From Mizuhopecten yessoensis (lineage: Eukaryota): a DNA stretch of 64,000 nucleotides. The notes under the pieces were generated by a model. The model saw only the letters and a list, made by a program, of their open reading frames with translations, searched no databases and was not told the DNA's origin. A program made the position numbers and the translations under genes. Shown here one piece after another: positions 451 to 55,034 of this stretch (positions are counted from its first letter, which is position 1; the number at the start of each line of letters is the position of its first letter). Where the stretch lies: positions 1,575 to 65,574 of the forward strand of contig NW_018406268.1 of the NCBI RefSeq assembly GCF_002113885.1, written 5' to 3'.

Positions 451-1011
451 TCATATTTGCTGTAATTCAATAAAATTAAATATATATGAAATGAAATAGT
501 ATAAAGGCGTTTTCAATGAATCAAATGTGTAAGAATATGTACCAATTTGTTCTTGATACGCCCTTCGTCTTTGTGATCTTCTGTTATCAGAGTTCCGGGA
601 CCTCAACCTTGCGGAACGTGAATTCGGGCAAGGTGTACCAACTGTAGACGGATTCTGCAGTGTCTTCCAGTGATGGCCACCTGCATCGCCGCGGCGTACC
701 CGAACTGCCTTCCCGTCATGCTTCATTGATGTAAGTGTTTCTTCCGTCAAACCGTCATAAACTCTTCGGACGGGAATATCTCTACGTTTTCCGAATCTCT
801 CCAGCATCTGAAACACCAACAGCCTCCTGTTATCAAGTGTGTACCAGACTCTACGGCTTTTGACGACCCTGATTTCTGGTATATTAGATATTTTAAGATG
901 TCCTGTCAACAGATCATCCAATGTTTCGCCGATTGGCTTATTGGGATGCCCAAAAACATTATTGATAGAATCCTGAGAAAAACGTATTTCACTCGGTCGT
1001 AGAGTCATCAT
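451..1011 (-). CDS. Gene A1: single ParB/Srx-like domain protein with R/S-rich basic tail (~186 aa if unspliced)
   Basis: MMTLRPSEIRFSQDSINNVF...IGETLDDLLTG...IPEIRVV...WYTLDNRRLLVF. ATG 1011 is homologous to the A3 start. It has an in-frame 12-nt deletion relative to A2/A3. The 3' end is uncertain (possible weak donor near 541). Confidence 0.7.
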   Translation of the reverse strand: MMTLRPSEIRFSQDSINNVFGHPNKPIGETLDDLLTGHLKISNIPEIRVVKSRRVWYTLDNRRLLVFQMLERFGKRRDIPVRRVYDGLTEETLTSMKHDGKAVRVRRGDAGGHHWKTLQNPSTVGTPCPNSRSARLRSRNSDNRRSQRRRAYQEQIGTYSYTFDSLKTPLYYFISYIFNFIELQQI

Positions 1012-2379
1012 TTCTCCCATTAGGACAATGTAAGTATGAATCACCCGTATTACAGAAATCTATGTATGGCTTTTAGGGATAAATATATATTAGTTACCCG
1101 GTATATGATAACGTCATTAATGATAGGAGATAAGATATATATTATCCATGATATAATTGTATAAAACGCATGCCCTCGGATAATTGATTTATATATATCT
1201 CCTATACAAGTATCATCTGATAAATTGATTTGATGTAGTATTATTGGCTATGAAATATGATAACTATCAGTAACTTTGACCTCTACGCGACATATATTTG
1301 ACTTGCAAAAGTAATGGGATATTCATTTCTTAAACAAAGTTTAGAAAATCACAGAATACTAATAGAAACATTTTATTGGTATTTGCTATTTTGAAAAAAG
1401 TCCCAACAGATTAGATTGGATTGAAAGTCTCATTGTCCTATATTCATACAAAAACACGGTACGCTCCATAAGCGTTTTACTTATGAAATGCATAGTATCA
1501 TGTGGTCTCTCTCATAGCAAAAATTTAATTACGAATTAATGATCTGAATCACCCTTGTATGACAATAACTAGATATGTGGATTGCTTAAGCTTTTGCGAG
1601 AATTTATCGCTAGACCTATGTAAATCCCATCGTCCTTCTTAGCAGGTTCCATGATGTATCTCATACGGCATATTTACATAAATCATATAAAAAAGCACGA
1701 ATCAACTTGACGGAGTTGGTGATTCTGGCATTAGTTTATGTCAGTAAATAATCTTAATGGTAAAGGATAATTTTATCTGAATAATTGGATAGTTGGATAG
1801 CAGAAATACTTGACAACTGTCTAATAAATAATTGAATAATTAGGTATAACAAATTGGGCATTTGTCATGGTATATGTTGATATCGTTTGTGATCAAACAG
1901 ATAATTATAAATCATATAATCAAATAAAGAAGGGGGATAACTCAAGAATTAATAATATCCTATATTGGAGCTCTTTTTTTGTGATTATAACTAGTGTAGT
2001 AGTGCTCTTTACCTTAAAGGAAAATGTCAGTGAAGGATAATGTACTGATAATTTGAATGGAGGATTACATGTAGTGAACTATTGTCTGTTGCTTGAACAA
2101 GTGATCAAATTTTCAAGATAGAAATATATAAATTAATAAAAATATTTAAATAAGAAAAACAGACCGGTACGGTTTATTTCTTGAAGGTGATCGTTTTATT
2201 CATATTAAGTCTTAGGGTATGCAAACATTGTTTTCATCTTATCATATAGGAAGTTGTCACTTATCATTACCTTACATTAATGTGTCTTTATGGAAAAGAA
2301 ACTTGATACAACTACGCCAAGGAACCAATGTATCAAATCACATATCAGATTTACCATTGATTGCCAGTGTTGATAACCA

Positions 2380-2705
2380 GTGGATATTTCAAACAAAAAC
2401 CACAAAAATGTGGGATATACTATAGTTATACCTTTTGTGTATAATCTAGTGTAAATGTATTATGTAAATTTTGTGTAAAATTTAAACAAAGAATAGAAAT
2501 AGTGTGATATATTATAACTATAACTTCTGTTTACAGTCTTCTGTAAAAATGTTAACATACTTTATGCATACTTTATGGATATTTCAACAAAAGTTAAACA
2601 AAATTGTGACATATTGTAGTTATTACTTCTGCGTTTAATATTTTGTAAAAGTGTTAATGTATTATGCCTATTTTGTAAAATAAAATATTAATACAAACAG
2701 TGTCA
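2380..2705. repeat. Degenerate ~78-bp AT-rich minisatellite, 4-5 units (paralogs ~21170-21510, ~43050-43460)
   Basis: Recurring gtaaa(a)tgt..tatg.atattttgt..a.att..aacaaaa..agaaa..gtg.cat units. Confidence 0.5.
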
Positions 2706-2989
2706 AAGTATTTACAGTTTAAGAATGATAAATATGTTTAAAAAAACAAATGCTTTAGTTACGGAACCCTTTAGATATTAAAAAAAACTGCTGTGGCATA
2801 TATATTTAGAGGAGTGTAAAGCAGTGTGAAATATTCATGGTATTGAATAATAACCTTTACCGGAAGTAATTGACTTTTACTTGCCACAATGAACAGGGTC
2901 ATTGCAACCTTTAACTACAATGATGAACGACAACATGTACGTTAAACTCACCTAAGACAAATGCTCTTTTGCCGAAAGTCTTTGGCCAA

Positions 2990-5900
2990 AGCTTGAATTT
3001 TTCAATTGACCTTGGTGTTGCAGCAATTCTCCTACGCATATAGCTGTCAGATCCCTCATTATCTCTGTGTTTTAGTCCTGACGTGACAAATGACCTCGGT
3101 GTAGCAGCACTCCTATCCAGATAGCTATCAGACCCCTTATTATCTTTGTGTTTTAGTCCTGACGTGACAATTGACCTCGGTGTTGCTGCACTCCTCCTCA
3201 ACGATGCATATCACAACCCTCAATATCTTTGTGTTTTAGTCCTGATGTGACAATTGACCTCGTTGTTGCAGCACTCCTACCCAGATAGCTGTCACATCCT
3301 CATTATCTTTGTGTTGTAGTTGAGACGTTTCAATTGACCTCGTTGTTGCAGCACTCCTCATAGTCCGATGCATATCACAACCCTCATTATCTTTGTGTTT
3401 TAGTCCTGATGTGACAATTGACCTCGTTGTTGCAGCACTCCTACCCGGATAGCTGTCAGATCCCTCAATATCTTTGTGTTTTAGTTGTGACGTTTCAATT
3501 GACCTCGGTGTTGCAGCACTCCTCCTTCTCCGATGCATATCAGCTCTCTCATTATTGTGACTTTCATTACTTGACGTGTCAACTGACTTCGGTGTTGTAG
3601 CAATAGTCCTTCTCCGATGCACATTAGATCCCTCATTATTGTGACTTCCATCACTTGGCGTGTCATTTGATCTCGGTGTTGCAGCAATTCTCCTTCTCCG
3701 ATGCATATCAGATCCCTCTTTATCTTTGTGTTTTAGTTGTGACGAGACAATTGACCTCGGTGTTGCAGCATCCATCCTACTCCGATGCATATCAGATCCC
3801 TTTTTATCTTTGTGTTTTAGTTGTGACGAGACAATTGACCTCGGTGTTGCAGCAATTTTCCTACCAAGATAGCTATCAGATTTCTCATTTACTTTGTGTT
3901 TTAGTTGTGAAGTGTCATTTGACCTCGGTGTTGCAGCAATTCTCCTACTCAGATCGTTATCAGTTTCCTCATTATCTTTGTGTTTTAGTTGGGAGGTGTC
4001 ATTTGACCTCGGTGTTGCAGCACTCCTACCCAGATAGCTATCAGATCTCTCATTAACTTTGTGTTTTAGTTGTGACGTGTCATTTGACCTCGTTGTTGCA
4101 GCAATTATCCTACTCAGATAGCTATCAGTTTCCTCATTATCTTTGTGTTGTAGTTGAGACGTTTCAATTGACCTCGTTGTTGCAGCACTCCTCCTAGTCC
4201 GATACATATCATAACCCTCATTATCATTGTGTTTTAGTTCTGATGTGACAATTGACCTCTTTGTTGCAGCACTCCTACCCAGATAGCTGTCAGATCCCTC
4301 AATATATTTGTGTTTTAGTTGTGACGTTTCAATTGACCTCGGTGTTGCAGCACTCCTCCTACCCAGATAGATATCAGATTACTCATTATTGTGACTTTCA
4401 TCACTTGACGTGTCATTTGTCCTCGGTCTTGCAGCAGTCCTCTTACCCAGATAGATATAAGATCCCTCATTATCTTTGTGTTTTAGTTGTGACGTGCCAT
4501 TTGACTTCGGTGTTGTAGCAATAGTCCTTCTCCGATGCATGATAGAATCCTCATTACTGTGACTTCCATCACTTGAGGTGTCATTTGATTTCGGTGTTGC
4601 AGCACTCCTCATAGTCCGATGCATATCACAACCCTCATTATCTTTGTGTTTTAGTTGTGACGTGCCATTTGACTTCGGTGTTGTAGCAATAGTCCTTCTC
4701 CGATGCATGATAGAATCCTCATTATTGTGACTTCCATCACTTGACGTGTCATTTGATTTCGGTGTTGCAGCACTCCTCCTACCCAGATAGATATCAGATT
4801 CCTCATTATTGTGACTTTCATCACTTGACGTGTCATTTGACTTCGGTGTTGTAGCAATAGTCCTTCTCCGATGCATGATAGAATCCTCATTATTGAGACT
4901 TTCATCACTTGACGTGTCATTTGACTTCGGTGTTGCAGCAATTCTCCTACTCAGATCGCTATCAGTTTCCTCATTATCTTTGTGTTTTAGTTGTGAGGTG
5001 ACAATTGATCTCTTTGTTGCAGCACTCCTACCCAGATAGCAGTCAGATCGCTCAATATATTTGTGTTTTAGTTGTGACTTTTCAATTGACCTCGGTGTTG
5101 CAGCACTCCTCCTACTCCGCTGCATATCAGCTCCCTCATTATTGTGACTTTCATTACTTGACGTGTCAATTGACTTCGGTGTTGTAGCACTAGTCCTTCT
5201 CCGATGCATGATAGAATCCTCATTATTGTGACTTCCATCACTTGACGTGTCATTTGATCTCGGTGTTGCAGCAGTCCTCCTATCCAGATAGATATCAGAT
5301 TCCTCATTATTGTGACTTTCATCACTAGACGGGTCATTTGACCTCGGTGTTGCAGCACTCCTCCTTCTCCGATGCATATCAGCTCTCTCATTATTGTGAC
5401 TTTCATTACTTGACGTGTCAATTGACTTCGGTGTTGTAGCACTAGTCCTTCTCCGATGCATGATAGAATCCTCATTATTGTTACTTCCATCACTTGACGT
5501 GTCATTTGACATCGGTGTTGCGGCAGTCCTCCCACCCAGATAGATATCAGATCCCTAATTATCTTTGTGTTTTAGTTGTGACGAGACCATTGACCTCGGT
5601 GTTGCAGCACTCATCCTACTCCGATGCATAGCAGATCCCTCCTTATCTTTTTGTTTTAGTTGTGACGAGACAATTGCCCTCGGTGTTGCAGCACTCCTCC
5701 TACTCCGATGTATATCAGCTCCCTCATTATTGTTACTTTCATTACTTGACGTGTCAATTGACTTCGGTGTTGTAGCACTAGTCCTTCTCCGATGCATGAT
5801 AGAATCCTCATTATTTTGACTTCCATCACTTGACGTGTCATTTGATTTCGGTGTTCCAGCACTCCTCCTACCCAGATAGATATCAGATTCCGACGAGACA

Positions 5901-7850
5901 ATTGACCTCGGTGTTGAAGCACTCATCCTACTCCGATGCATAGCAGATCCCTCCTTATCTTTTTGTTTTAGTTGTGACGAGACAATTGACCTCGGTGTTG
6001 CAGTGTCATTTGACCTCGGTGTTGCAGCACTCCTACCCAGATAGCTGCCAGGTCCCTCAATATCTTTGTGTTTTAGTTGTGACATTTCAATTGACCTCGG
6101 TGTTGCAGCACTCCTCCTACTCCGCTGCATATCAGCTCCCTCATTATTGTGACTTTCATTACTTGACGTGTCAATTGACTTCGGTGTTGTAGCACTAGTC
6201 CTTCTCCGATGCATGATAGAATCCTCATTATTGTGACTTCCATCTCTTGACGTGTCATTTGATCTCGGTGTTGCAGCAGTCCTCCTATCCAGATAGATAT
6301 CAGATTCCTCATTATTGTGACTTTCATCAGTTGACGTGTCATTTGACCACGGTCTTGCAGCAGTCCTCTTACCCAGATAGATATAAGCTCCCTCCTTATC
6401 TTTGTGTTTTAGTTGTGACGCGACAATTGACCTCGGTGTTGCAGCACTCCTACCCAGATAGCAGTCAGATCGCTCAATATATTTGTGTTTTAGTTGTGAC
6501 GTTTCAATTGACCTCGGTGTTGCAGCACTCCTCCTTCTCCGATGCATATCAGCTCTCTCATTATTGTGACTTTCATTACTTGACGTGTCAATTGACTTCG
6601 GTGTTGTATCAATAGTCCTTCTCCGATGCATGATAGAATCCTCATTATTGTGACTTCCATCTCTTGACGTGTCATTTGATCTCGGTGTTGCAGCAGTCCT
6701 CCTACCCAGATAGATATAAGATCCCTCATTATCTTTGTGTTTCTTTGTGTTTTAGTTGTGACGAGACCATTGACCTCGGTGTTGCAGCACTCATCCTACT
6801 CCGATGCATAGCAGATCCCTCCTTATCTTTTTGTTTTAGTTGTGACGAGACAATTGACCTCGGTGTTGCAGCACTCCTCCTACCCAGATAGCTATCAGAT
6901 CTCTCATTAACTTTGTGTTTTAGTTGTGAAGTGTCATTTGAACTCGGTGTTGCAGCAATTCTCCTACTCAGATCGCTATCAGTTTCCTCATTATCTTTGT
7001 GTTTTAGTTGTGACGTGTCAATTGACTTCTGTGTTGCAGCAATCTTCCTACTCAGATAGCTGTCAGATCCCTCATTACCTTTGTGTTTTAGTTGTGACGT
7101 GTAATTTGACCGCGGTGTTGCAGCAATTCTCCTACTTCGATGCATATCAGATTCCTCATTATTGAGACTATCATCACTTGACGTGTCAATTGACTTCGAT
7201 GTTGTAGTAATAGTCCTTCTCCGATGCATGATAGAATCCTCATTATTTTGACTTCCATCACTTGACGTGTCATTTGACATCGGTGTTGCGGCAGTCCTCC
7301 TACCCAGATAGATATCAGATCCCTAATTATCTTTGTGTTTTAGTTGTGACGAGACAATTGACCTCGGTGTTGCAGCACTCCTCCTACCCAGATAGCAATC
7401 AGATCCTTCATCATCTTTGTGACTTTCACCACTTGATGTGTCGTTTGACCACGGTGTTGCAGCACTATCAGATGAGATATGGTCAACTTTCCAACGTCTC
7501 CAATATCTACCCTCTGGATCGCCCCGTACACGAATATCTGTCCCATCATTTTATGTTGTTAATTTTTTCCGGGGGATCCTATGATGACCTTTTTGTACCG
7601 GAATTACGGTACATTGTCCAAGCTCTTCGAGGTTCCGAAACACCCACAATCTCCTATTATCGGCCGAAAACCAGATTTCATTCCTTTTGACAACAGTTAT
7701 AGGCAGTATGTCCGATATACTACACTTTCCTGTCAAAAGGGCGTCCAATGTTTCACCGATATGTGTATCGGCATGAATGGATTTTTTGTAGAATACATTG
7801 TTGATAGAATCCTGACTAAATCGTATTTCACTCGGTCGAAGTTTTAACAT
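2990..7850 (-). pseudogene. Gene B1: ParB/Srx-like domain + ~50 basic 28-aa repeats, disrupted
   Basis: MLKLRPSEIRFSQDSI...ADNRRLWVF from ATG 7850. AAA>TAA at 7553-7551; the frame continues NDGTDIRVRGDPEG. TAG at 7325-7323 and 5557-5555, a 10-bp duplication frameshift at ~6732-6751, and TAA at 4381-4379. The C-terminal tail is deleted and the repeat is joined to the 3' flank at ~3000. Confidence 0.85.
3000..7465. repeat. Coding-derived 84-bp (some 81-bp) tandem repeat, ~50+ units with higher-order blocks
   Basis: ttgacctcggtgttgcagca recurs about every 84 bp; the minus-strand translation is SAATPRSNDTSQLKHKDNEGSDxYLGRR-like. Confidence 0.95.
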
Positions 7851-7891
7851 TTTCTCGCTGCCTGACAATGTAAATCAAGATCAATGCATTA

Positions 7892-7959
7892 CTTATATAT
7901 ATATATTTGTCATCCAAGGACTATACCAATGTCATTTTGCTTCAGGTTCAATGACGTCA
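7892..7959 (-). promoter_or_regulatory. Putative B promoter: CRE palindrome TGACGTCA (7952-7959) and TATA-like box ~45 bp upstream of the ATG (CRE also at 47731-47738 in B3)
   Basis: Motif match; position conserved in B1 and B3; A genes have TGACGTTA at a similar offset. Confidence 0.45.
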
Positions 7960-8434
7960 TTCAGGATCAAACGTACACTGTACCAAGATTAATGGCACTT
8001 CTTATTTTTTGTTGAATTATATCTTATCATATATTTCTATTCGTTAGTATTTTTTAGGATTAAAACGTTTCGAAATGATGACTTGATCCACATTTGACAT
8101 GTTGTCCCCTTGATTATGCAATGGTATATCACACTTTATTGAGATAGGCTAGTCTAAATAAACATACTGTTGAACACGTAACTTTATTTAAATGTGTTGG
8201 AAACGTTCCAAAAGACACCGATACAATATTTCAGCCCAGTCCATTGTCACCAGATACGTCAAAAGATACACTATATGACTGTGCTGTGTGTGTATTTTTT
8301 TTAGACCCAGTTGTGCAAGCCTTATGAGATATTTAGTATTTTCTGTCTGTTCGCGGAAGGTGGTATTGTGATCTGCTTAGCGACAATTGCTATATTGATA
8401 TTTAAAGTAATACATACACACTTCACATTTTAGT

Positions 8435-9445
8435 AAAACAACAGGCCAAACAGGCCTACATCGCTCACCTGGTATTAATCTCTCACTTGTAACCTAAAAT
8501 TTGACTAAAATCTATGACTGTAAGTCATTCAAAAATAAATGTTAAAAGATTGAAACATATATGACCCCTGTGATTTTAAAAGTCTAACAATGTAATGAAG
8601 TTTAAAAGACTTTATAGCCCATCATCTCGGCATGCAACTTGCAAAATATCACCACCGTAGATCTTTTGTTTATTGAGATAAATATTTTTACACATATGGC
8701 AATATGTTACGGTGAACTTAAAGTCTTAGCATGTTACTTGCAAATTATCATTATTTTGGGCCTTTATGTTCCTCAAAAAATCTCCTTTAAATGTTTTAAA
8801 GACAACAAACTCCTATGACCTTAAATATAAGTCGTGGTAATTCATTTAATCAAACTTGGTATCACTTCATACCAACATGTTACTTGCCAAATGTCATCAT
8901 CCTGGACCTTCTAGTTATTAAGAAGAGGTTGTTTATATGTTTTAAATATACGCAAAGGTCATTCATTTGCGCAAACTTGACAGTCCTTAATCCAAGCATG
9001 CTTCTGACGAAATATCATCACCCTAAGCCTCTTGGTTCTTGCAAAGAAATCGTTTAAAGTAAAAGGTTGACACCGGACTGACGACGGACTGACTGACAGA
9101 CAGACAACCAGAAAGACAGACAATAATCTTCCTGATCCTTTTGGTTATGCAAAAGAAGTCATTCAAAGATTTTAAACATATATGACCCATTTAACCTTGA
9201 ATATAAGTCAAGGTAATTCATTTTAACAAAGTTGGTAGCCCCTCATCCAAACATAATACTGGCTAAATATCAGCATCCTGGGACTTCCATGCTATTCATG
9301 CATATTGTTTAAACAAATGTTTTTAAAATAATTGACCCATGTGACCTTGAATATCAGTAAAAGGCATTCATTTTATTCAGAAAAAGTTGTTAAAGTAAAA
9401 AGTTGACACCGGACGGACGAAGGCCACCGCTTTTCGGGCCAAGTT
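8435..9445. mobile_element. Non-autonomous Helitron/Helentron-like (HINE-type) element with internal ~150-bp subrepeats and GACG/GACA microsatellite
   Basis: Starts aacaacaggccaaacaggcctacatcgctcacctgg; internal tgaccc.tgtgaccttgaa...caaacttgg repeats; gacggac(a/t)gac and ggacggacga tracts. Family assignment is from recalled bivalve repeat architecture. Confidence 0.6.
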
Positions 9446-10155
9446 AGATACAAAACCTGACACAAAACTTTATATACAGAGGAAGTAAATGTTCGGGCCT
9501 AGAATATTCCTTTCAATGTATTTAATTGTAGAGTGCAATGTTTTTTCGTGTTATGGTCAGAGCTCAGATATTTCTTCACTTTTAATAATTAATATCATAT
9601 TGGCACATACAGAGGTACCTCTAATACAATCTAACCATACAATTCCTAGGACAATAACGTTAACCTTGCATACATAATAATTTTTCATTTTTTTTTTTTT
9701 TAAATGAACAAAAATCAATTCAAATTATTTTGATTTTACAGCAGGTTTATTTCACAAAAATTATAATTGTTTAAAAATTAGAAACATAAAATAATTATTT
9801 AAAGCACTGTAACAGTCCATATATTAATGCTGAGTCTTGTTATTTCACATGTGTTTCATTTCGATTATATTAGTGTCAAGCATAAACTGAAACACAATCT
9901 CTTTAATGACAGACAATTATATGCCCGTCTCTTATTTCAGTTCACATATACGTACATTGTAAAAAATGTTTTAACAAAAAGATAAAAATCTATCTTAATA
10001 TAAACCAAAATACATACCCACAAATGATACGCACTACTGCATTCATCACAAAGGTTGTAAAATATACACCTAACGTTGTTTAATCTGCATACAGTAGAAG
10101 TGTACACTATATATTTTGACAATGTACGACCTAAAAATATTATATGATATGCAAC

Positions 10156-10192
10156 TTCTGGGAACCAGCACGCTAGTTGTAGTTTCATTTTC
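10156..10192. promoter_or_regulatory. GAS (TTCTGGGAA, 10156-10164) + ISRE (AGTTTCATTTTC, 10181-10192) pair upstream of gene B
   Basis: Exact consensus matches. Both are kept at 31734-31770; GAS only at 51090-51098. Confidence 0.35.
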
Positions 10193-11601
10193 GGTAATTC
10201 TTGATATAGTAGCATCGTTAGTATATCTTCGCTCGTGAAAACACAAGACAGCACTACCCAATATACATTTTATGTTTATACATTCCTACCTGACTCAATG
10301 TAACAATGTAACGACTAGATACACGCTAATAATTACCCAAGGTCATACTTCTACTTAGTATATGCCATCCTCACCCGTGTTAGTGTATTTAAGACGAAAA
10401 AAAACAAAAGTTTTACCCAAGTGATGTAATTTGAAACTAACTACATACCATCTTTAATCTTTACTAAAGTTAATTTATTTTGATACTAGATATTAATCAT
10501 GTTTGTAAAAAACATAAGGCTTGTTTACCCGTCCCTCTAAGATTTTATAGCATAGCTGTATTTGAATAATTGGAAAAATAATGTTTAACCTGAAACCTAT
10601 TTGCCCAGTGCATGTAAATGTATTTCGATACTAAAATACATTCTTGTTGTATTTTTGCCATATTGATTGTGTAAAATCAAACGAGATACATGTCATAATT
10701 TCCCAAATTAATGTATTTTCAATACTGGATCTATGCCACCTTTAGCGAAGTGAATATACCTTAACACAAGATGCACACTATCTTTACAAACATGAAAAAA
10801 CTTCAATTCACAAAATATATTAAATTGCATAAGTTCCACTACTACATTCCATTATCCGATAATTGGCTGATCATTGATCACATTATCACAGCTCTGTAAT
10901 ATACACTTTACTCATTATTAATTTGAGATTATCCATTACTCCTTTATCTAATTCATGTAATTGAAGGGTTTTATGAAACTCTCCTTCTGTTAGACCTTTT
11001 TGGATTTAGGCCTTGTGGGATCCCTTACCTCACCGATGAGTCCTAGTAGAACGAAATAGCTTAACGGTGCATTTTTTGGCTTACTGTATCTGTTACCATA
11101 TTGTATAGGTGCACTCCCTTTATGCTAACAGAGAAGAGGATATTTATACACTATTCCTCAACTATCAATAACTTCTTGTATTCAAATCTTTTTCCTGAAC
11201 TGGTAAAATAACCACCGCTTAGAACCGGGAACATTTCAAAAATTATTAACGAGGAAGGTCAAGGACGTCGAGGATTAATTTTACTATTTGATAATACATA
11301 TATGAACTCCAATGATCTCACCAATAAATACTTGTTTTACTTGAGAAATGTATGTTCTCTCAAAGCAAAAAAGGCATTGTTTAGATTTAATACTTTTTTA
11401 TTGCCATAATGCAACTGAATTTGGCACAAGTCATACAATTTATATAACGCTCTTTCCATAAATATAACAATCATATATACAACAAACTTACAAGATGGCA
11501 CCCTCAAAATTACTTTACAAATAAGTTATCGAAATGACAAATTGACGTACATGCGTTCACTCATTCACACACCAATACACACAAACTCACACGCGTTTAT
11601 A

Positions 11602-15673: not shown

Positions 15674-15722
15674 TATGATCGTTGGCTCTAGACCTGTGGG
15701 CAGTTACCTAACACAATAACTG

Positions 15723-37516: not shown

Positions 37517-37532
37517 GAAACTGAAACTGAAA
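37517..37532. promoter_or_regulatory. C2 ISRE GAAACTGAAACTGAAA
   Basis: Three GAAA cores at 6-bp spacing, same offset as in C1. Confidence 0.7.
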
Positions 37533-44800: not shown

Positions 44801-44945
44801 GTTTGAACACAAATCATCCAAACTGTACTAGGAAACATTTGGAATATTGTTCCCCGATGAAGATGTCCCCTACAGAAAGATGAAAGTTTGGCATGTCAAT
44901 GAACCCGAAAGTTAGCAAATACCCTATTGTTACTACGAGGACAAA

Positions 44946-47630
44946 TCATCCATAGCTAACCCTAAATATGGGTCCATATCCGTACCCGTACCAACCTTCA
45001 TAGCCATGTCCATGGCCTTCTCCATAGCCCTCCCCATGGCCATATCCTTCGTTATATCCAAACCTAAATCCATAGTAACATTCACCGTAACAGTATTCAT
45101 CGCTGTCTTCAAAGCTACAGGAACATTGATCGCTATTAGATTCCGCTGAATCGTGGTGTTCTAGACCTGGTGAGTCATTTGGCCTCAGTGTTGCAGCACT
45201 GCTGGCACGTCGACACCTATCAGATCCCACAACACTGGGTTGTTCTAGACGAAGCGTGTCTTTTGGTCTCGGTATTTCAACACTTTCGGTACGACGAGAC
45301 ATACCCGATCCCACTTTATCGTGGTGTTCTAGACGAGACTTGTCTTTTGGTCTCGGTATTTCAACACTGTCGGTGTACCGATTGATATCCGATTCAACTT
45401 TGTCGTGGTGTTGTTGACTGGACGTGCCTTTTGACCTCGGTGTTGAATCACTCTTGGCATGCCGACGACTATCAGATCCCTCTATATTGTGGCGTTCCCG
45501 ACTAGCTGTGTTATTTGACCTCGGTGTTGCAGCACTAGTCCTACTCAAACATTGATCAGATCCCTCATTATTGATGCGCACTAGTCGTGAGGTGTCAATT
45601 GACCTCGTTGTTTTAGCACTCTTTTTATGGGGAGACCTATCAGATCCCTCTACATCGTGGCGTTCCCGACTAGCTGTGTTAGTTGACCTAGATGTTGCAG
45701 CACTCTTTCTAATCCTATATTGATAAAATCCCTCATTTTCGTTGCGTACTAGTTGTGAGGTGTCAATTGAACTCGTTGTTTCAGCACTCTTCCTAGGGCG
45801 ATACCTATCAGATCCCTCATCATCGTGGCGTTTCGGACTAGCTGTGCTATTTGTTCTCGGTTTTGCAGCACTCGTTCTACTTCTATATTGATCAGATCCC
45901 TTATTTTTGTTGCGTACTAGTTGTGAGGTGTCAATTGAACTCGTTGTTTCAGCACTCTTCCTAGGCCAATACCTATCAGATCCCTCATCATTGTGGCGTT
46001 CCCGACTTGATGTATTATTTGATCTCGATATTGCATCACCCTTTGTACGCCGATATCTAGCCGATCCCTCATTATCGTGACGTTCCAGTCGTGAAGTGTC
46101 ATTTGAAATCGGTGTTACAATGCTTATTAAATGCTGATACCTATCAGATCTCTGTACATCGTGGCGTTCCCGACTAGCTGTGCTATTTGACCTCGGTGTT
46201 GCAGCACTCGTCCTACTCCTATACTGATCAGATCCCTCATTTTTGTTAAGTTCTAGTCGTGAGGTGTCAATGGACCTCGCTGTTTCTGCACTCTTCCTAG
46301 ATTGAAATCGATCAGATCCCTCAACACCATTGCGAGCTAGACTTGACGTGTCATTTTGACCCGGTATGTCAGCTGTTTTGGTGTACCGACATCTATCAGA
46401 TCCCTCATCATCGTGGTACTTCTGTCTAGATGTATCATTTGACCTCGGTATTGTATCACTCTTTGTACGCCGATACCTATCAGATCCGTCTTCATCGTGA
46501 AGTTCTAAACTTGGTGTGTTATTTGACCTCGGTATTGCATCCATCTGTGTACGCCATATTATATGCCGACGACTCTCAGATCCCTCTACATCGTGGCGTT
46601 CCCGACTAGCTGTGTTATTCGACTTGGGTATTGCAGCACTCGTCCTACTTCTATATTGATATGATTCCTCATAAGCGTTGCGTACTAGTCGTGCGATGTC
46701 AATTGACTTCGGTGTTTCAGCACTCTTCCTAGGGCGACACCTATTAGATCCCTCATCATCGTGGCTTTCCGGAATAGCTGTGCTATTTGACCTCGGTGTT
46801 ACAGCACTCGACCTACTCCTATACTGATCAGCAACCTCATTTTTGTTGAGTTCTAGTCGTGAGGTGTCAATTGACCTAGCTGTTTCAGCACTCGTCCTGT
46901 TGCAATATCGATCAGATCCCTCATCACCATTGCGAGCTAGACTTGACGTGTCATTTTGACCCGGTATGACAGCAGTTTTGGTATGCCAATACCCATCAAA
47001 TCCGTCTACATCGTGACGTTCAAAACTTGGTGTGTTATTTGACCTCGGTGTTGCAGCAGTCTCCGTTCGCTGATATTTATTAGATCTATCTACAATGAGG
47101 TGTTGTAGACTTGACGTGTTACCTGACTCCGTTGTTGCAGTACTCTCCATTCGCCGATATGTATTTGATCCCTCATCATCCTTGCGTTCAAGACTTGACG
47201 TGGCTTTTGACCTCGATGTTGCAGCACTATCGGTACGATGATACCTATAAGCCGTGATATGGTTTTCATTCGGACGTCTCCAATAAAAACCTCCTGGATC
47301 GCGTCGTACACGAATATCTGTCCCATCTATTTTTGTTGTGAATTTTCTCCGAAGAATCTCAAGACTCCCCTTTCGAACCGCTATTTCGGTACATTGTCCC
47401 AGCTCTTCGAGCTTCTGAAATACCCACAATCTCCTGTTATCGGCCGAGTACCAGATTTCATTCCTTTTGACCACAGTTATAGGCGGTATGTCCGAGATTT
47501 TACACTTTCCTGCCAACAGGGCGTCCAATGTTTCACCGATATGTGTATCGGTATGATTGGATTTTTTGTCGAATACATTGTTGATAGAATCCTGACTAAA
47601 TCGTATTTCACTCGGTCGAAGTTTTAACAT
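44946..47630 (-). CDS. Gene B3: ParB/Srx-like domain + ~24 x 28-aa S/T/R/D/H repeats + Gly/Tyr-rich C-terminus, 894 aa, single coding exon
   Basis: Uninterrupted ORF from ATG 47630 (MLKLRPSEIRF); SADNRRLWVF; ends GYGHGEGYGEGHGHGYEGWYGYGYGPIFRVSYG. Confidence 0.9.
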   Translation of the reverse strand: MLKLRPSEIRFSQDSINNVFDKKSNHTDTHIGETLDALLAGKCKISDIPPITVVKRNEIWYSADNRRLWVFQKLEELGQCTEIAVRKGSLEILRRKFTTKIDGTDIRVRRDPGGFYWRRPNENHITAYRYHRTDSAATSRSKATSSLERKDDEGSNTYRRMESTATTESGNTSSLQHLIVDRSNKYQRTETAATPRSNNTPSFERHDVDGFDGYWHTKTAVIPGQNDTSSLARNGDEGSDRYCNRTSAETARSIDTSRLELNKNEVADQYRSRSSAVTPRSNSTAIPESHDDEGSNRCRPRKSAETPKSIDIARLVRNAYEESYQYRSRTSAAIPKSNNTASRERHDVEGSESRRHIIWRTQMDAIPRSNNTPSLELHDEDGSDRYRRTKSDTIPRSNDTSRQKYHDDEGSDRCRYTKTADIPGQNDTSSLARNGVEGSDRFQSRKSAETARSIDTSRLELNKNEGSDQYRSRTSAATPRSNSTASRERHDVQRSDRYQHLISIVTPISNDTSRLERHDNEGSARYRRTKGDAISRSNNTSSRERHNDEGSDRYWPRKSAETTSSIDTSQLVRNKNKGSDQYRSRTSAAKPRTNSTASPKRHDDEGSDRYRPRKSAETTSSIDTSQLVRNENEGFYQYRIRKSAATSRSTNTASRERHDVEGSDRSPHKKSAKTTRSIDTSRLVRINNEGSDQCLSRTSAATPRSNNTASRERHNIEGSDSRRHAKSDSTPRSKGTSSQQHHDKVESDINRYTDSVEIPRPKDKSRLEHHDKVGSGMSRRTESVEIPRPKDTLRLEQPSVVGSDRCRRASSAATLRPNDSPGLEHHDSAESNSDQCSCSFEDSDEYCYGECYYGFRFGYNEGYGHGEGYGEGHGHGYEGWYGYGYGPIFRVSYG

Positions 47631-48396
47631 TTTCTCGCTGCCTGACAATGTAAATCAAGATCAATGCATCACTTATATACATATTTGTTATCCAAGGACT
47701 ATACCAATGTCAGTTTTGCTTCAGGTTCAATGACGTCATTCAGGTTCAAACGTACACGGTACCAAGATCAATGGAACTTCTTAATTTATGTTGATTTTTT
47801 TTTAACGTAGTCGTTAATATTTTTTAGGATTAGAACGTTTCGAAATTATGACTTGATCCTCATTTGACATGTTGTCCCCTTGATTATGCAATGGTATATC
47901 ACACTTTATTGAGATAGGCTAGTCTAAAAAAACATCCTGTTGAACACGTAACTTTATTTAAATGTGTTGGAAACGTTCCAAAAGACACCGATACATTAAT
48001 TCAGCCCAGTCCATTGTCACCAGATACGTCAACAGATAAACTATACGACTGTGCTGTGTGTATATTTATTTCAAACCCAGGTGTGCAAGCCTTATGATAT
48101 TTTTTTTCTTTTTCTGTCTGTTCGCGGAAGGTGGTATTATGATCTGCTTAGCGACACTTGCTATATTGATATTTAAAGTAATACATACACACTTCAAATT
48201 CAGGTAATTTTAGTCATTAACGACAGGCCAAATAGGCCTGCATCGCTCACCCGGTATTAATCTCTCACTTGTTCCCTAAAATTTGACTAAAATCTATGAC
48301 TGTAAGTCATTCAAAAATAAATGTTAAAAGATTGAAACATATATAACCCCTGTGATTTTAAAAGTCTAACAATGTCATGAAGTTTAAAAGACTATA

Positions 48397-49557
48397 ATTA
48401 CATTTGCATGGCATTGTCACTATATAGCCTCTTTGAAAGCTGTGTCGTTGATGGGACTTTAATTACCATGCATCACGAGACACAATTCTTAGCGTATTAA
48501 TACAACACTGACCGGAACTACAATATCCAATATAAATAAACATGACGGCTGCTGAAATATCGCTGGGCATTGTGAGATTTGACAATGTCATTGTAAATTT
48601 ATGTGCAAAATAAAAAATAAAATAAAAAACACTTTTATTACAACGAAAACAAGACCAAGGTCTGCAATATCGTACAAAATGCACATCGGTTGAAATCACC
48701 AATGCCGGCAATGGAAACAATTTTAACGCTCATGCAATTTATCAGAAATATCGTCTGTTACACTGCACTGATCAACAGGGGTTCGTTACAAATGTCTGAA
48801 ATACACATATTCTATAGACCTACTGACACATATGTTACAGACCTACTGATATGAGTCACAGCACACATAAACATTTCAGACATTTGTAACGAACCTGTGC
48901 TCCGTCGCAAGATCACTCACTTAAAATGCTATCTCTCACGCGTCTCGCATCCACCATTCCTCAGTTTCTGACGACATGTCAAATAACGAGGATGTTATAG
49001 AATCTACCGACTGTTGTCAGGTTCCCATACAATCAACAAATACATTCACGCCTGGATTCTTCACAAAATGAGAAAAGAGAAAAGTTCGAATTAACTTCCA
49101 AAAATAACTCCCTCGTGGAGGGCAAGGTCGGATTTACGGTGTTCACTGTATTTGTCCATGCGCGAAATTTGTTCCGGGGAAAAATCGAAACAATTTCAAA
49201 TATAACTTTCAGCTCAGAGTTCTATTGATAAACTTAAATCACTCTATAGACATATCATACGCAATTGTATTGATACTGAATTGTGGAATAAAATTGAAGT
49301 GTTTGTTAAAATGTCAAAGCACTACTTTGTTTGCCGATCAGCACGCGACAATACGCTGTTCAAACTATTGAACGAAATTGTATGGACTGTCGATAAGGCG
49401 GGCATTTTTAATTTTAAATATAAATTATTAGTTAAAAAAGAACATAAGAGGCAGAGAAAACGTAAATATAAGTATAGCGCGCATTATGTTGTTTGCTTGC
49501 AAAGCTGTGTCATTCAAATAGATAATAAATACCATACAAAAACAGTTCAATGCTAAA
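48397..49557. mobile_element. Unclassified non-coding insertion at a TATA site
   Basis: The empty site gacttTATAgccc in units 1/2 becomes gacTATA[insert]TATAgccc. Confidence 0.7.
48780..48895. mobile_element. 116-bp mini-MITE/hairpin with perfect 23-bp inverted repeats
   Basis: ggttcgttacaaatgtctgaaat (48780-48802) / atttcagacatttgtaacgaacc (48873-48895). Confidence 0.75.
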
Positions 49558-52207
49558 TATAGCCCTTCATCTCGGAATGCAACTTGCAAAATATCACCAC
49601 CCTAGATCTTTTGTTTATTGAAATAAATGTTTTTTCACATATGGCAATATGTTACGGTTAACTTAAAGTCTTAGCATGTTACTTGCGAATTATCATTATT
49701 ATGGGCCTTTTTGTTCCTCAAAAGATCTCCTTTAAAAGTTTTAAAGACAATAAACTTGGTATCACTTCATCCCAGCATGTTACTTGCCTAATGTCATCAT
49801 CATGGGCCTTCTAGTTATTAAGAAGAGGTTGTTTATAGATTTTGAATATATTTGACCCATGTGTCCTTGAATATACGCAAAGGTTATTCATTTGCGCAAA
49901 CTTGATAGTTCACTAATCCCAGCATGCTTCTGACGAAATATCATCACCCTAAGCCTCTTGGTTCTTGCAAAGAAATCGTTTAAAGTAAAAGGTTGACACC
50001 TGACTGACGACGGACAGACTGACAGACAGACAACCAGAAAGACGGACAATTATCTTCCTGAATCTTTTGCAAAAGAAGTCCTTTAAAGATTTTAAACATA
50101 TTTGACCCATTTAACCTTGAATATAAGTCAAGGTCATTAATTTTAATCAAGTTGGTAGCCCTTCATCCAAACATAATACTGGCTAAATATCATCATCTTG
50201 GGACTTCAATGTTATTCAGAAGTTGTTTAAAAAATGTTTTTAAAATAATTAACCCATGTGACCTTGAATACCAGTAAAGGCATTCATTTTATTCAGAAAA
50301 AGTTGTTAAAGTAAAAAGTTGACGCCGGACGGACGACGGACGCCGCCTTTCGGGCCAAGTTAGTTACAAAACATGACACAAAACTTTATATACAGAGGAA
50401 GTAAATGTTCGGGCCTAGAATATTCCTTTCAATGTATTTAATTGTAGAGTGCAATGTTTTTCGTGTTATGGTCAGAGCTCGGATATTTCTCCACTTTTAA
50501 TAATTGAATATCATATTGGCATATACAGAGGTACCTCTAATACAATCTAAGCATGCAATTCCTAGGACAATAACGTTAACCTTGCATACATAATATTTTT
50601 TGTCAAAAATGAACAAAAATCAATTCAAATTATTTTGATTTTACAGCAGGTTTATTTCACAAAAGTCACAATAATTGAAAAATTAGAAACATAAGATAAT
50701 ATTTAAAGAGTCTGTAAGTGAAACCTTGCCACTATAACAGTCAATATATTGATGCTGATTTCTTAAGCCTTGTTTTCCCACATTTGTTTTATTTCGATCA
50801 TATTAGTGTCAAGCATGCACTGAAACACAATATCTGTAATGACAGACACTTATATGCCCGCCTCTTTTTTCAATTCACATAATACGTACATTGTAAAAGT
50901 GTTATAACAAAATGATAAAAATCTTTCTTAAAATTAACCAAATTACATAACTACAAATGATACACATTACTGCATTCATCACAAAAGTTGTAAAATATAC
51001 ACCTAACGTTGTTTAATCTGCATACAGTAGAGGTGTGCACTATATATTTTGACAATGTACGACCTATTTTTTTTAATATGATATACAACTTCTGGGAACC
51101 AGCTTGCCAGTTGTAGTCTCTTTTTCGGTAATTCTTGATATACATGTAGTAGCATCGTTAGTATATCTTCGCTCGTGAAAACACAAGACAGTACTTCCCA
51201 ATATAAATTTTATGTTTATACATTCCTACCTGACTCAATGTAACAATGTCACGACTAGATACATGCTTATATTACCCAAGGTCATACGTCTACTTAGTAT
51301 ATGCCATCCTCACCCATGTCAGTATATTTAAGTGATGTAATTTGAAACTAAATACATACAATCTTTTATCTTTACTCAAGTTATTTTATTTTGATACTAG
51401 ATACAAATCATGTTTGTATAAAATCATTAAGCTTGTTTACCCGTCCCTTTAAGATTTTATAAAATAGCTGTATTTAAGTAATTGTAAAAATAACGTTTAA
51501 TCTGAACAATATTTGCCCAGTCATTGTACATGTATATTGAATGTGCAAAATCAAACTAGATACATGTACATGTCATACTTACCCAAAGGAATGTATTTCA
51601 ATACTAGATCTATGACACCTTTAGCAAAGTGAATGTACCTTAATACAAGATACACACTATCTTTACAAACATGAAAATACTACAATTCACAAAATACATT
51701 AAATTGCATAATCATGGTGTTGATATTCATTATCTACGCTTTTTCTACTACTACATTCCATTACCCGATAATTGGCTGATCCTTGATCACATTATCACAG
51801 CTCTGTAACATACACTTTACTCATTATTAATTTGAAATTATCCATGACTCCTTTAATTAAGTTTATGTAATTAAAGGGTTTTATGAAACTCTCCTTCTGT
51901 TTAAACATACTTTAGACCTTTTTGGATTTAGGCCTTTTGGGATCCCTTATTTCACCGATTAGTCCTAAAAGAACAAAATAGCTTTACAGTGCGGAGTTAT
52001 TCATTGTTTTGCCTAAATTATCTGTTACCATATTTTATAAGTGCACTCCCTTCATCCTAACAGAGACGAGGGTATCCATACACTATTCCTCAACTATCAA
52101 TGATTTCTATTATTTGATAATACATATATAAACTCCAATGATCTCAACAATAAATACTTGTTTTACTTGAGAAATGTATGTTCTATCAAAGCATAAAAGG
52201 CATTGTT

Positions 52208-52390
52208 CAGTTCCCACTCTTGATGATTGTCGATTCGAATAAAATTTAAACGCATTAAAGCCATTACTTCAGTGTCCGCTTGTTTATTCACCAGACAATT
52301 GCGCATGCTCAGGGAGCATACCAACATACAAATACCCGGAGGGAGCAGTTATAAATTATAACATTATGATACGAATTACTAAAACACTAC
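52208..52390. mobile_element. 183-bp insertion with 10-bp target duplication
   Basis: aggcattgtt at 52198-52207 and 52391-52400; single copy in units 1/2. Confidence 0.7.
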
Positions 52391-53648
52391 AGGCATTGTT
52401 TTGATTTAATACTTTTGTATTTCCATAATGCAACTGGATTTGGCACAAGTCATACAATTTATATAACGCTCTTTCAATAAATAAACAATCATATATACAA
52501 CAAAATTACAAGAGTACGAAATATTAAAGTTCAAGTAGAATCCTAATGTGGTAATAATGAAATCGGACCATGTGGTTGCTCTTTCTCCATGCAAACGGAA
52601 CTAGTGATTATCTGTTTGCTGTTCATAATGTTCTGCCGTTCAATTGTTCATCACTTTCTGTGCTAATAACGTCCTCTTGTTCACTCCTTGCCTGCTGGTG
52701 TTTCTGTTTCCACTAGTCGGCTGTCATAGAGAGAAAGACCGAGCACAAGGTCCAAATACATTTTCGCATACAATTATATTTATAAAGCGATTGTATATAA
52801 TACTATGATAATCGGATATCGATAGACATGTGAGAGAGGGAAAGAAGGGAGGAGAGAGGGATTGTAATTAAAATCGATAAGAATCATGAATGTATTGCCG
52901 AGTGTGCATGAAAATCCAAATGTTTTTTTGTTCCGAATTATTTGTATCGCCAAAAAGAAGTAGGTTCAGAGTAAGAGGTACACGTATGTATTTGTTAAGC
53001 CCACGATAAAGTTAAACTTAAGGCATTTAGGGCATTGACATTTTGTCTTAACATTTTGTTATACAGTATTTCATTTTTAGACATAAAATGGATTATTAAG
53101 AATATTGTATATATAATACTTAATAACTAATCAATATGTAAATGTTAAACCAAATGTTAATCTATCACCTACTTCATTAAATCAAATTAAAAACGTAATA
53201 ACAAATAAATTTTAAATAAAATAATATGTGGTATGATTTGCATATTGTATGCTAGCAAAACGAACGGTAAAAAGTAAGGGTAATTTAAAATGCACACATG
53301 TAACATGTGGTATCAAAGTATTGGTAAATATCACATACGCATCATACCTACGTAATCTTTATTTACATATGTCACGCGCATGCTATGAAATATATATAAG
53401 ACATATATTCTAGTTTGCTTGTTTACATCATTAATGTGTTATATTTGATCTTTTTTAAATATATGCTTAAGTTTTATTTTTTATTATCATGGATGTGCTT
53501 ACAAAAACCACAAACTCCTTTATTAATAAAAAGAAACTATTCATAAGATTATTTCTATAAATGGATTTGATAGTTATCACCGTTATCGCATAGTTTAATT
53601 TTTTAATTTTCGCCTGTATATTACAGAACTGACCACATACTGAGCTCA

Positions 53649-54886
53649 TTACTCCGTAATTATTTCAGTATAATCATAAACAGAGCTTAAATCATTGAGG
53701 GATTTACCAATCATTCTTGGCATCGTATTGTCCAGGAGTTGTCGATCCTCTATAACAATCGCAGCGATTTCGGATTTTGTTGATTTCTGGAAAGCCCAAA
53801 GACGCCTATTTCCGTCGATGACACTCATTGCTGTTTCGGCTTGCCAAACAACGATGGATGGTATATTTTGGCATTCCAGATTTTCAGAAATCAGGTCATT
53901 GACGAGAGTCATTACATTGACCCCTGAATGATCTCCTGAAGAAAAGGTCATTGGAATAACAGCTTTGGTGAACTTAACACTCATCGGGTCAATGTGCGTA
54001 ACATTCGGGGCCTTGTGCCAGTAGCCACCTGGTTCTGCTTCGTCTTTTATCTCGACAGAAACACCACGATTTTCCGACGACCTTTTTATTGAGCTGATAT
54101 AAAACACCTCTCGGAAAGAAATCTCTTTACACCTGCCTGGAAGAAAACAACGCATTCATGTCATAAACGGGGAAAACCCAAGAAGGTTCATAGACCTGGG
54201 CAGATTGAACAAAATAGGGCCGACATTAAAACAACGAATATAAAACAAATATCAAACCTTATTCTAAAGTTCGGTTTCCATCTGGTTGTGTTTAGATTTT
54301 AGCCGGAGTAGGTTGTCGAACTTACTCATGGGCCGAACTATGACCAGTCTCTCCTACTAGTAATATTGCAATATTCGTGTTTGAATTTTAAAGGAATTAA
54401 AGTTGATGTATATTCATTACTTCAAAAATCTCCAAACAACAGTAGCTGAAACTAATCATTTATACGAATATAATCTCATTTTCCCCGTGTGTATTCCGAA
54501 CCATTTGACATTGTTTGCTTGATGCCGCAAATATATCAACGATTTACCATCACAAACCCCAAAGTTAAGAGCATACCTAGTCTTTCCAAGTGTCTGAAAA
54601 TCCAAAGACGACGGTTGTCCGCGGTAATCCAACGAGTCTTCTTCCCGCCTACCAACGTCTCCCCACCTGTCTCCTCGTCTTCCTCCTGTTTTAAATCTAT
54701 TTCCGGAAGTGATGTCATTGATAGTCGACCCTCCATTATCTCGTCTAGGGTATCGCCAATGGTCATGTGTCCGTGCCCAGACCACCGCCGAAAACGATGG
54801 TAGACTACCTTCTGACTAAAACAGATGTCAGACGGTCTTAATTTAGACGGTTTTGTATTTTCTGACAAAGACCATGAAACCTCCAT
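53649..54886 (-). CDS. Gene C3: double ParB/Srx-like domain protein, 265 aa; join(54886..54577,54136..53649)
   Basis: Donor G|GTATGC, acceptor ttttcttccag|GC, 440-bp intron; both motifs intact. Confidence 0.9.
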
Positions 54887-55018
54887 AACAATAGATGGCT
54901 CTAGATCTGTGGGCAGTTACCTAACACACTATTGAATTATTTACTGTATTATCACGTCTAGGCAAACGCTTTCAGGAAGTCTTTATTTTTCGAAACCGAA
55001 TATAGAATTTACAGAATC

Positions 55019-55034
55019 GAAAGCGAAACTGAAA
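55019..55034. promoter_or_regulatory. C3 ISRE GAAAGCGAAACTGAAA
   Basis: IRF-E consensus GAAA(G/C)(T/C)GAAA; same offset as in C1/C2. Confidence 0.7.

Follow-up and report, generated by a model that had tools for sequence, protein, structure and literature searches.

We analysed a 64,000-nucleotide stretch of the genome of the scallop Mizuhopecten yessoensis (contig C2941, positions 1575–65574; hereafter the window), an AT-rich sequence (GC content 29–43%) carrying an array of genes built on one domain, which probably represents a eukaryotic branch of the toxin-associated family Tox-ParBL1. Self-BLASTN of the window showed that a unit of ∼21.7 kb is present three times, collinearly and in direct orientation, at approximately 1–18404 (unit 1), 18504–40112 (unit 2) and 40402–56676 (unit 3). 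Units 1 and 2 are 93–96% identical, and unit 3 is 84–91% identical to either. TBLASTN with four domain queries identified 12 copies of a ∼115-residue domain and one short fragment, with E values of 1e-15 to 1e-99; every one lies on the minus strand. Each unit comprises three paralogous genes, referred to here as A (the domain and a short tail), B (the domain and a long repeat tail) and C (two domains, one intron). Unit 1 holds A1, B1 and C1; unit 2 holds an A2 pseudogene, B2, the fragment and C2; and unit 3 holds A3, B3 and C3. Reading frames are intact in seven of the nine genes, the broken ones being B1 and A2. The locus arose by recent segmental triplication of a three-gene paralogous block. 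An original prediction for this DNA had described nine genes plus one fragment on the minus strand, in three A–B–C units with 12 domain copies, and this layout was recovered, as was the proposed tandem expansion with pseudogene turnover (A2, B1 and the fragment are broken). It had also called the locus a system or cassette; as A, B and C are paralogues within a single domain family and not distinct components, ‘three-gene system’ overstates the case.

Gene C has the same two-exon structure in each unit. In C1, exon 1 (15364–15673) encodes the first domain and ends at the donor AG/GTATGT, while exon 2 (12982–13469) encodes a linker and a second, more ParB-like domain (D-G-N-R-R-L-W) and is preceded by an AG acceptor at 13471–13470, phase 1; TBLASTN placed the first and second domains at 15323–15673 and 12982–13422. 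The corresponding exons are 37077–37386 and 34745–35232 in C2 (domain matches 37036–37386 and 34745–35185), and 54577–54886 and 53649–54136 in C3 (domain matches 54536–54886 and 53649–54089). The introns of C1, C2 and C3 measure 1894, 1844 and 440 nt, all GT–AG and phase 1, with AG/GTATG donors and CAG acceptors. The joined translations are identical to the NCBI ‘uncharacterized’ proteins XP_021354753.1 (P0004), XP_021354751.1 (P0155) and XP_021354754.1 (P0153). We joined the exons only to check the frame and the identity to these records, and the records themselves were used for searches. Across 12900–15900 (gene C1), 14 RNA-like runs from seven studies, two of which are on record as RNA, hold 0.27–0.35 of the sampled words; this equals the exon share (∼0.30) and so fits spliced C mRNA. 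With phase-1 GT–AG introns, identity to the NCBI models and a word share like that of spliced RNA, these are genuine animal genes.

Genes A and B carry a splice acceptor directly before the ATG, so that 5′ exons and promoters would lie further upstream, and their tails are rich in Arg, Ser and Thr, with T-P-R-S repeated. A1 (451–1044, minus strand) is an intact open reading frame (ORF) in which a ParBL1 domain (motif D-N-R-R-L-L) at the N-terminus precedes a short tail rich in Arg and Ser, and A3 (41318–41818) is an intact 166-residue ORF with the motif variant D-K-R-R-M-W and the splice acceptor just before its ATG. A2 (19559–19914) is a pseudogene, with a frameshift after ...T-L-D-D-I-L and an in-frame stop. 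In B1, the domain exon (7479–7868) is interrupted by an in-frame TAA at 7551–7553, making it a probable pseudogene or the source of a truncated product, and the tail (3002–7466) consists of 53 copies of an 84-bp (28-residue) repeat split over several frames, as judged from Tandem Repeats Finder (TRF) and the ORF list. B3 (44946–47648) uses the same 84-bp unit, present in ∼24 copies (TRF) within a single intact 900-residue ORF that comprises the domain, ∼24 repeats of 28 residues and a Gly/Tyr-rich end. B2 exon 1 (27986–28747) encodes the domain and the first part of the tail and is 100% identical to XP_021354750.1 (P0007) over residues 1–246; the NCBI model then splices to about 27523–27311, reaching an acidic tail array at 25762–27342 (36 copies of a 45-bp repeat, TRF). 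The ORFs of 355–577 residues lying over this array (25523–27408) are mostly artefacts, since the 45-bp repeat is open in several frames on both strands, and the acidic minus-strand frame is the one used by B2. Downstream of the acidic array, TBLASTN with the B3 C-terminus detected a relic of a basic B-type tail (23157–23498; 57% identity, E 7e-9). The domain fragment of unit 2 (29194–29395, TBLASTN) contains two stops and is a pseudogene piece. The repeat tails vary, as had been predicted, the three B arrays differing in copy number or repeat unit (53 × 84 bp, 36 × 45 bp and ∼24 × 84 bp, TRF).

Within the window copies, D70, R72 and R73 are invariant and N71, L74 and W75 nearly so, and across 86 aligned sequences R73 is invariant and R72 and N71 nearly invariant. 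A3 (D-K-R-R-M-W) and A1 (D-N-R-R-L-L) depart from the (D/G)NRRLW motif noted originally. A second conserved segment, P-S-x-I-R-F-S/T-Q-D-S, lies near the N-terminus, with S13 and Q19 conserved in at least 90% of the 86 sequences. The position of the sulfiredoxin (Srx) motif G-G-C-H-R reads A-D-N-R-R or D-G-N-R-R in all copies, so the catalytic Cys is absent. The domain is N-terminal in 144 of 155 proteins and starts at residues 1–5, which leaves no room for a signal peptide, and Pfam found no helix-turn-helix (HTH) and no other domain in the window proteins; the predicted lack of Srx Cys, HTH and signal peptide was in each case confirmed. In the first domain of gene C (15430–15500), the loop that connects the third strand to the strand leading into N-R-R carries an acidic insertion; distant picoeukaryote homologues (P0222, P0228 and P0231) share an acidic insertion in this loop, either by convergence or as an old feature.

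Sequence models gave faint indications of the fold. For six window proteins, Pfam returned only a sub-threshold ParB_N match (E 0.029), in the second domain of C and centred on D-G-N-R-R-L-W, and NCBIfam gave weak noc/parB matches to the same segment of the C second domain only (TIGR00180, 17 bits in one copy against a cut-off of 58). With PADLOC the sole matches were weak ones between PD-Lambda-5_A and, again, the C second domain (best E 0.0012), and sequence searches of the PDB with the single domain, the 86-row profile, the C second domain and a C second-domain profile produced no significant match. An AlphaFold2 model of the B2 domain, built from the 86-row alignment, had a mean predicted local distance difference test score (pLDDT) of 91 and a predicted template-modelling score (pTM) of 0.85. 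The top Foldseek matches of this model in the PDB were all ParB, Noc, sulfiredoxin, SbnI or SerK (E from 7e-4, probability 1.00). VIA-align against 48,161 PDB representatives gave 16 chains with Z of at least 2, of which ranks 1–10 all belong to the ParB/Srx superfamily (Z 8.3–3.2), led by Atu1540 (8.3), Srx (6.9) and SerK (6.7) and followed by SbnI, PadC, KorB, pNOB8 ParB, Osa and Spo0J; the best unrelated chain reached Z 2.9. The ParB/Srx fold named in the original prediction is thus confirmed for the modelled domain. A model of gene C (P0004 with 23 two-domain homologues; pLDDT 82, pTM 0.79) shows two domains of the same topology, both matching ParB/Noc, and the second-domain type (D-G-N-R/K-R-L) is found again in other bivalve two-domain proteins.

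In the model, the segments P-P-I-T-V-V ... W-Y-S-A-D-N-R-R-L-W-V-F ... I-P-V form a strand-strand-helix-strand register. The equivalent register is P-I-x-V ... Y-x-I-I-x-G-E-R-R-x-R-A ... V-P-A-I-V in ParB, and Y-S-F-G-G-C-H-R-Y-A-A in Srx, where ParB Box II (G-E-R-R) and the Srx G-G-C-H-R hold the phosphates of CTP or ATP. Since the secondary-structure register of the model matches the ParB and Srx motifs, N-R-R is predicted to lie at the phosphate-binding Box II.

In an ESM-Atlas search by shape, a mollusc cluster (template-modelling score, TM, 0.90) was followed by bacterial clusters with PT-HINT (0.77), RHS (0.76 and 0.74), PT-VENN (0.70) and MafB (0.69) modules among their members, which are polymorphic-toxin tips, the toxin-cluster matches spanning 100–112 residues and being much nearer than any PDB match; the same search by features gave no usable match. 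TBLASTN of the B2 domain against plasmids found relatives in Sinorhizobium (E 3e-7) and Haliovirga (E 6e-6, 37% identity over 106 residues), and also in Bacillus toyonensis and Streptomyces. We extracted three of these bacterial ORFs, and the animal profile aligns with them end to end (53–73 bits), the I-R-F-S/T-Q-D/N-S segment also being present in all three tips. The Bacillus ORF is the C-terminus of an RHS core followed by a ParBL1-type domain, and the Haliovirga ORF, situated downstream of an RHS gene, contains a PT-TG pre-toxin module. Directly downstream of each of the three tips lies an ORF of 83–84 residues matching Pfam DUF7660 (L004:6306–6557, L005:6319–6570 and L006:6357–6611); the three are mutually 40–42% identical and come from three phyla. 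Such an arrangement is typical of toxin–immunity cassettes, and because the DUF7660 ORF adjoins a ParBL1-type tip in three phyla, it is a candidate immunity protein for Tox-ParBL1 toxins. The placement of the domain in a toxin-type branch and not with chromosomal ParB, which had been suggested originally, accordingly stood, on the shape search, the TBLASTN and profile matches and the RHS/PT-TG/DUF7660 context.

Tox-ParBL1 was described computationally as a divergent ParB fold with a conserved N-terminal Ser/Thr that classical ParB does not have, and an [NT][RT][RT] motif in which R-R predominates and which corresponds to D-G-H-H-R in classical Tox-ParB (Zhang et al. 2012, PMC3482391). Its bacterial members form the toxic ends, at the C-terminus, of polymorphic toxins of the RHS, MafB, CdiA and PT-HINT types. 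Its type member is the MafB toxin NGK_2271 of Neisseria gonorrhoeae, and carriers are stated to include ‘several metazoans’, fungi, plants, stramenopiles, ciliates and kinetoplastids (PMC3482391). The scallop domain shares the fold, the N-R-R motif, the N-terminal Ser and homology to toxin C-terminal tips. We therefore assign it to a eukaryotic branch of Tox-ParBL1, and give a probability of about 0.75 to the explanation as a whole, namely a triplicated block of eukaryotic Tox-ParBL1 genes with the NTP (nucleoside triphosphate) biochemistry set out below. The family was thus not undescribed, as had been claimed: metazoans were already listed among its carriers, and UniProt labels one C copy ‘ParB/Sulfiredoxin domain-containing protein’. 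The scallop genes carry a toxin domain but do not form a polymorphic toxin system: they have neither an adjacent immunity gene nor an N-terminal trafficking or repeat region, and no DUF7660-like ORF was found in the window (best E 0.05) or in the scallop genome (best E 0.16).

From the register of the model, the D-N-R-R segment would occupy the place of ParB Box II and Srx G-G-C-H-R and hold the phosphates of an NTP, and the P-S-x-I-R-F-S-Q-D-S segment would sit where ParB Box I contacts the nucleotide. D-N-R-R at Box II together with a conserved Ser segment at Box I makes the domain most likely NTP-binding, and we predict, with somewhat better than even confidence, that it binds NTP and hydrolyses it or transfers its phosphate. 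The fast-changing, low-complexity tails of A and B would govern where the proteins act or how they are regulated. In C, the two domains would pair with each other in the manner of the NTP-closed dimer of ParB N-domains, and by this analogy a pseudo-dimer within a single C chain is plausible.

Several observations weigh against this explanation. The TM values of the Foldseek matches to solved ParB/Srx structures are only 0.40–0.49, and the MafB (PF06255) cluster at TM 0.69 stands as a proxy for the type member NGK_2271. No bench study or measured activity for any Tox-ParBL1 member, bacterial or animal, was found in the literature, so that NTP binding is deduced from fold and motif position. The S-Q-D-S motif is partly lost in both domains of gene C, and A3 has K at the N position of its motif; judging by these residues, a number of copies may lack activity. 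Of the nine genes two are broken, and neither A3 nor B3 appears in the protein collection. Across 40300–45400 (A3 and the 3′ end of B3, a region chosen to avoid the long tandem array), zero reads were recovered at 97% likeness from the raw RNA runs X21, X23 and X24, nor were there contigs in run X4, which holds gene C. The zero read count is a weak test, as 97% is strict for a polymorphic species and the presence of scallop in the raw runs is not shown elsewhere.

The family is broad. A profile search of 1.84 billion representatives gave 2808 matches at E ≤ 1e-3 and 710 at E ≤ 1e-10; the named homologues come from bivalves (scallops, oysters, mussels, clams and unionids), octopus, an annelid and tunicates, and the ESM-Atlas shape search added a cnidarian cluster. 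A homologue search with the domain region of B3 and long candidates returned three bivalve proteins only. Distant relatives (24–28% identity) occur in diatom transcriptomes and in picoeukaryote-like contigs, among eIF3, UPF3 and Nop genes. Three such ENA metagenome contigs (L001–L003), which are GC-rich, carry a single-copy homologue of ∼186 residues flanked by eIF3-zeta, UPF3, aldehyde dehydrogenase, protein kinase and Nop genes, with the synteny kept in three samples. The tails almost never contain a Pfam domain: among 77 long homologues there is one HSP70-12A fusion, one MADF and one filament match. The first of these, P0115 of Mactra antiquata (KAL4220205.1, 784 residues), has a ParBL1 domain at residues 1–113 followed by an HSP70-12A-type ATPase and is the only clear enzymatic fusion among the 77. 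A quick tree united the bivalve sequences in a single clade (95% support in the Shimodaira–Hasegawa-like approximate likelihood-ratio test, SH-aLRT) and placed A and B separately with Argopecten sequences (91% and 80% support), a pattern suggesting that the A/B split is older than the divergence of pectinids. The deeper branches have less than 80% support and the C second domain forms a long branch, so the tree could not settle whether there were one or several animal acquisitions.

The scallop genome contains at least 39 domain matches on ∼15 contigs, including an A/B-type array on contig C494 and a four-copy array on contig C5488; the two-domain C type matches well only in the window. On the 90-kb contig C494, eight A/B-type copies lie at 46020–89993, where one gene model (P0259, LOC110455930) fuses a B2-like gene, acidic tail included, to a C-terminus resembling that of A, and this array is either paralogous or a divergent haplotype. 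The window begins 1.5 kb from the start of its own contig, so three units is a lower bound. The array may extend past the assembly at C2941:1–1574. An assembly gap of 226 N at 11602–11827 lies in intergenic sequence, flanked by the B1 start (7868) and the C1 end (12982). Its flanks (8299–11601 and 11828–12690) align with unit 2 in collinear order and on one strand, with 128 bp between the matches (self-BLASTN), which is consistent with continuity of the sequence, and the true gap length probably differs from the 226 N written. No coding frame in the ORF list spans the gap, and an ‘ORF’ at 11587–11892 was rejected as an artefact of the N run, being composed of X. A lone N at 16393 is non-coding. 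Outside the triplicated block lies an unrelated AT-rich tandem repeat (62439–62858; period 24/47/71 bp, ∼17 copies of the 24-mer).

Promoters, selection and published work bear on the role of the array. An exact 12-mer resembling the interferon-stimulated response element (ISRE), AGTTTCNNTTTC, occurs five times in the window against 0.27 expected, and lies ∼130 bp upstream of all three C start codons, some 75 bp ahead of a TATA box. On the minus strand these sites are AGTTTCGGTTTC at 15804–15815 upstream of C1 (TATA box TATAAATA), AGTTTCAGTTTC at 37517–37528 upstream of C2, and AGTTTCGCTTTC at 55019–55030 upstream of C3. The other two exact matches, GAAAATGAAACT at 10181–10192 and 31759–31770, are in sense for the minus-strand genes and lie 2.3–3 kb upstream of B1 and B2; the unit 3 counterpart (51115–51126) has one mismatch. 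Because of the triplication, the five matches amount to two independent loci, and with one mismatch allowed 17 sites are found against 7.7 expected. Both variable positions of the C sites fall in the spacer, and since the C promoters are 91% identical overall, a kept 10-base core does not exceed background. No conserved exact element was found near the A or B start codons. The ‘ISRE promoters’ of the original prediction were not borne out in that form; the sites are a lead towards interferon-type control and not evidence for it. Pairwise dN/dS (the ratio of nonsynonymous to synonymous substitution rates) is 0.14–0.47 for C exons, 0.41–0.55 for B domains and 0.55 for A1/A3, with dS of 0.03–0.04 between units 1 and 2 and 0.09–0.26 in other comparisons; positive selection was not found at the level of the whole domain, dN/dS being below 1 throughout. 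A literature search on the scallop LOC identifiers, on ParBL1 beyond the 2012 paper, on ParB with ostreid herpesvirus 1 (OsHV-1) and on ParB in TRADD-N/HSP70 conflict found nothing relevant.

Tentatively, we take an intracellular stress or defence effector to be the single most likely role of these proteins. That they are inducible innate-immune effectors, antiviral or antimicrobial, acting on NTPs or nucleic acids under interferon regulatory factor (IRF)/ISRE control, as had been proposed, is a reasonable hypothesis but appears rather unlikely. Descent of the domain from a toxin speaks for such effectors, as do a lineage-specific expansion by birth and death (at least 39 genome copies, with two pseudogenes and a fragment in the window), the exact 12-mer upstream of every C gene with its two sense counterparts 2.3–3 kb upstream of B1 and B2, and the clam homologue fused to HSP70-12A. 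However, proteins with no signal peptide are not secreted antimicrobials, dN/dS stays below 1, the ISRE core is conserved no more than its 91% promoter background and represents only two independent loci, related single-copy genes stand among housekeeping genes in unicellular algae, and the four RNA runs held zero reads on A3/B3, weak as that test is. A non-immune role, nuclear and associated with chromatin, RNA or the germline, is possible though doubtful; the tandem array would then be ordinary inflation of a bivalve gene family. Zhang et al. (2012, PMC3482391) proposed that ParBL1 was taken into core eukaryotic functions, and homologues beside eIF3, UPF3 and Nop genes in picoeukaryote contigs, the Arg/Ser/Thr-rich tails with repeated T-P-R-S, rare fusions to DNA-binding modules (MADF and cnidarian C2H2) and purifying selection on gene C all agree with it. 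Extreme change in copy number and tail turnover are unusual for core functions, however, and the bivalve copies form one lineage-specific clade (95% SH-aLRT) rather than 1:1 animal orthologues.

We consider it improbable that gene C alone is functional, with the A and B copies as decaying by-products of segmental duplication. C is indeed intact in all three units, NCBI-annotated, lowest in dN/dS and supported by RNA words, while A2 and B1 are broken, A1 and A3 have motif changes, and A3 and B3 are unannotated and without reads; but the 900-residue frame of B3 is open through ∼24 repeats, the annotation of B2 includes a spliced tail, orthologues in Argopecten exist for both A and B, and the dN/dS of 0.4–0.55 in A and B is still below 1. 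A selfish toxin–antidote element, in which a ParBL1 toxin would be paired with a linked antidote such as the two-domain C protein, would recall the toxin–immunity pairs of the bacterial relatives and the constant linkage of the three paralogues, and is very improbable given that no DUF7660 homologue was detected in window or genome (best E 0.05 and 0.16). Bacterial contamination or an assembly artefact, for which one could cite only that the nearest non-animal sequence matches are bacterial, is refuted by the introns together with the synteny among units; the GC content of 29–43%, animal-type introns, a TATA promoter, the position of the genes on a 1.55-Mb contig and homologues in more than 15 bivalve genomes all oppose it. 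One further scenario is decidedly speculative: bivalves and some other marine invertebrates may have made a large family of intracellular, IRF/ISRE-responsive, NTP-dependent effectors out of a bacterial polymorphic-toxin tip, and upon infection these would attack viral or host nucleic acids or deplete nucleotides. If true, this would define a new class of animal innate-immune enzyme, with the NTP-closed dimer built into the single C chain.

The scallop genes clearly illustrate how animals have retained and multiplied a bacterial toxin domain, in a domain family that was named computationally in 2012 and has no Pfam model. Research on the ParB-CTPase fold is active, and a 2025 survey that used Pfam PF02195 reported sulfiredoxin as the most common eukaryotic representative of the ParB-CTPase fold (PMC12704722). 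The family described here is invisible to PF02195 and was missed by that survey, yet it has 2808 representatives and dozens of copies per bivalve genome. By bringing together intact and broken copies, single- and double-domain forms and swapped tails, the scallop array is a convenient starting point for work on the function of this branch, and as a by-product DUF7660 can be proposed as the immunity protein of bacterial ParBL1 toxins.

Among known systems, the closest is Tox-ParBL1 of bacterial polymorphic toxins, with which the scallop domain shares the ParB-like α+β fold, the N-terminal Ser/Thr, N-R-R and alignment to RHS/PT-TG tips. Unlike the bacterial members, the scallop domain is N-terminal and not C-terminal, has no delivery module and no DUF7660-type gene, is encoded with introns, precedes either disordered repeat tails or a further copy of itself, and belongs to a family massively expanded in bivalves. 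The tae-derived dae amidases of ticks and mites, reported in 2015 by Chou et al., are said to be secreted antibacterial enzymes whose function has been shown; there too an interbacterial toxin domain was kept by an animal lineage, whereas the scallop proteins lack a signal peptide and their role here is proposed. Sulfiredoxin, the usual animal member of the ParB/Srx superfamily, is likewise a single-domain fold without an HTH (Z 6–7) and has the same strand-strand-helix register at the phosphate motif, but in the scallop domain D-N-R-R stands in place of F-G-G-C-H-R with its Cys, sequence searches gave no significant match to Srx chains, and the genes form a multi-copy tandem family with long tails. 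The CTPase N-domains of chromosomal and plasmid ParB, Noc and KorB have the fold in common with the scallop domain and place the Box II arginine pair alike, the D-G-N-R-R-L-W-A of the C second domain closely resembling ParB Box II, whereas the scallop proteins have no HTH, C-terminal dimerisation domain, ParA-binding motif or parS context; canonical ParB/Noc membership fails at 17 bits against the TIGR00180 cut-off of 58, and the tails have no Pfam domain. The last comparison is with ToxB, which is the classical Tox-ParB tip found on CdiA toxins; it is an ATP-binding and ATP-hydrolysing protein whose toxicity extends to plant cells (Kaljevic et al. 2026 preprint, doi 10.64898/2026.05.05.722872). 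Like the scallop domain, it is a ParB-CTPase fold without an HTH, in its case reused as a toxin, and it is the only working model for a toxin-type ParB fold; unlike ToxB, which was found with PF02195, the scallop domain lies below the reach of that model (best E 0.029, in one copy) and belongs to a different sub-family.

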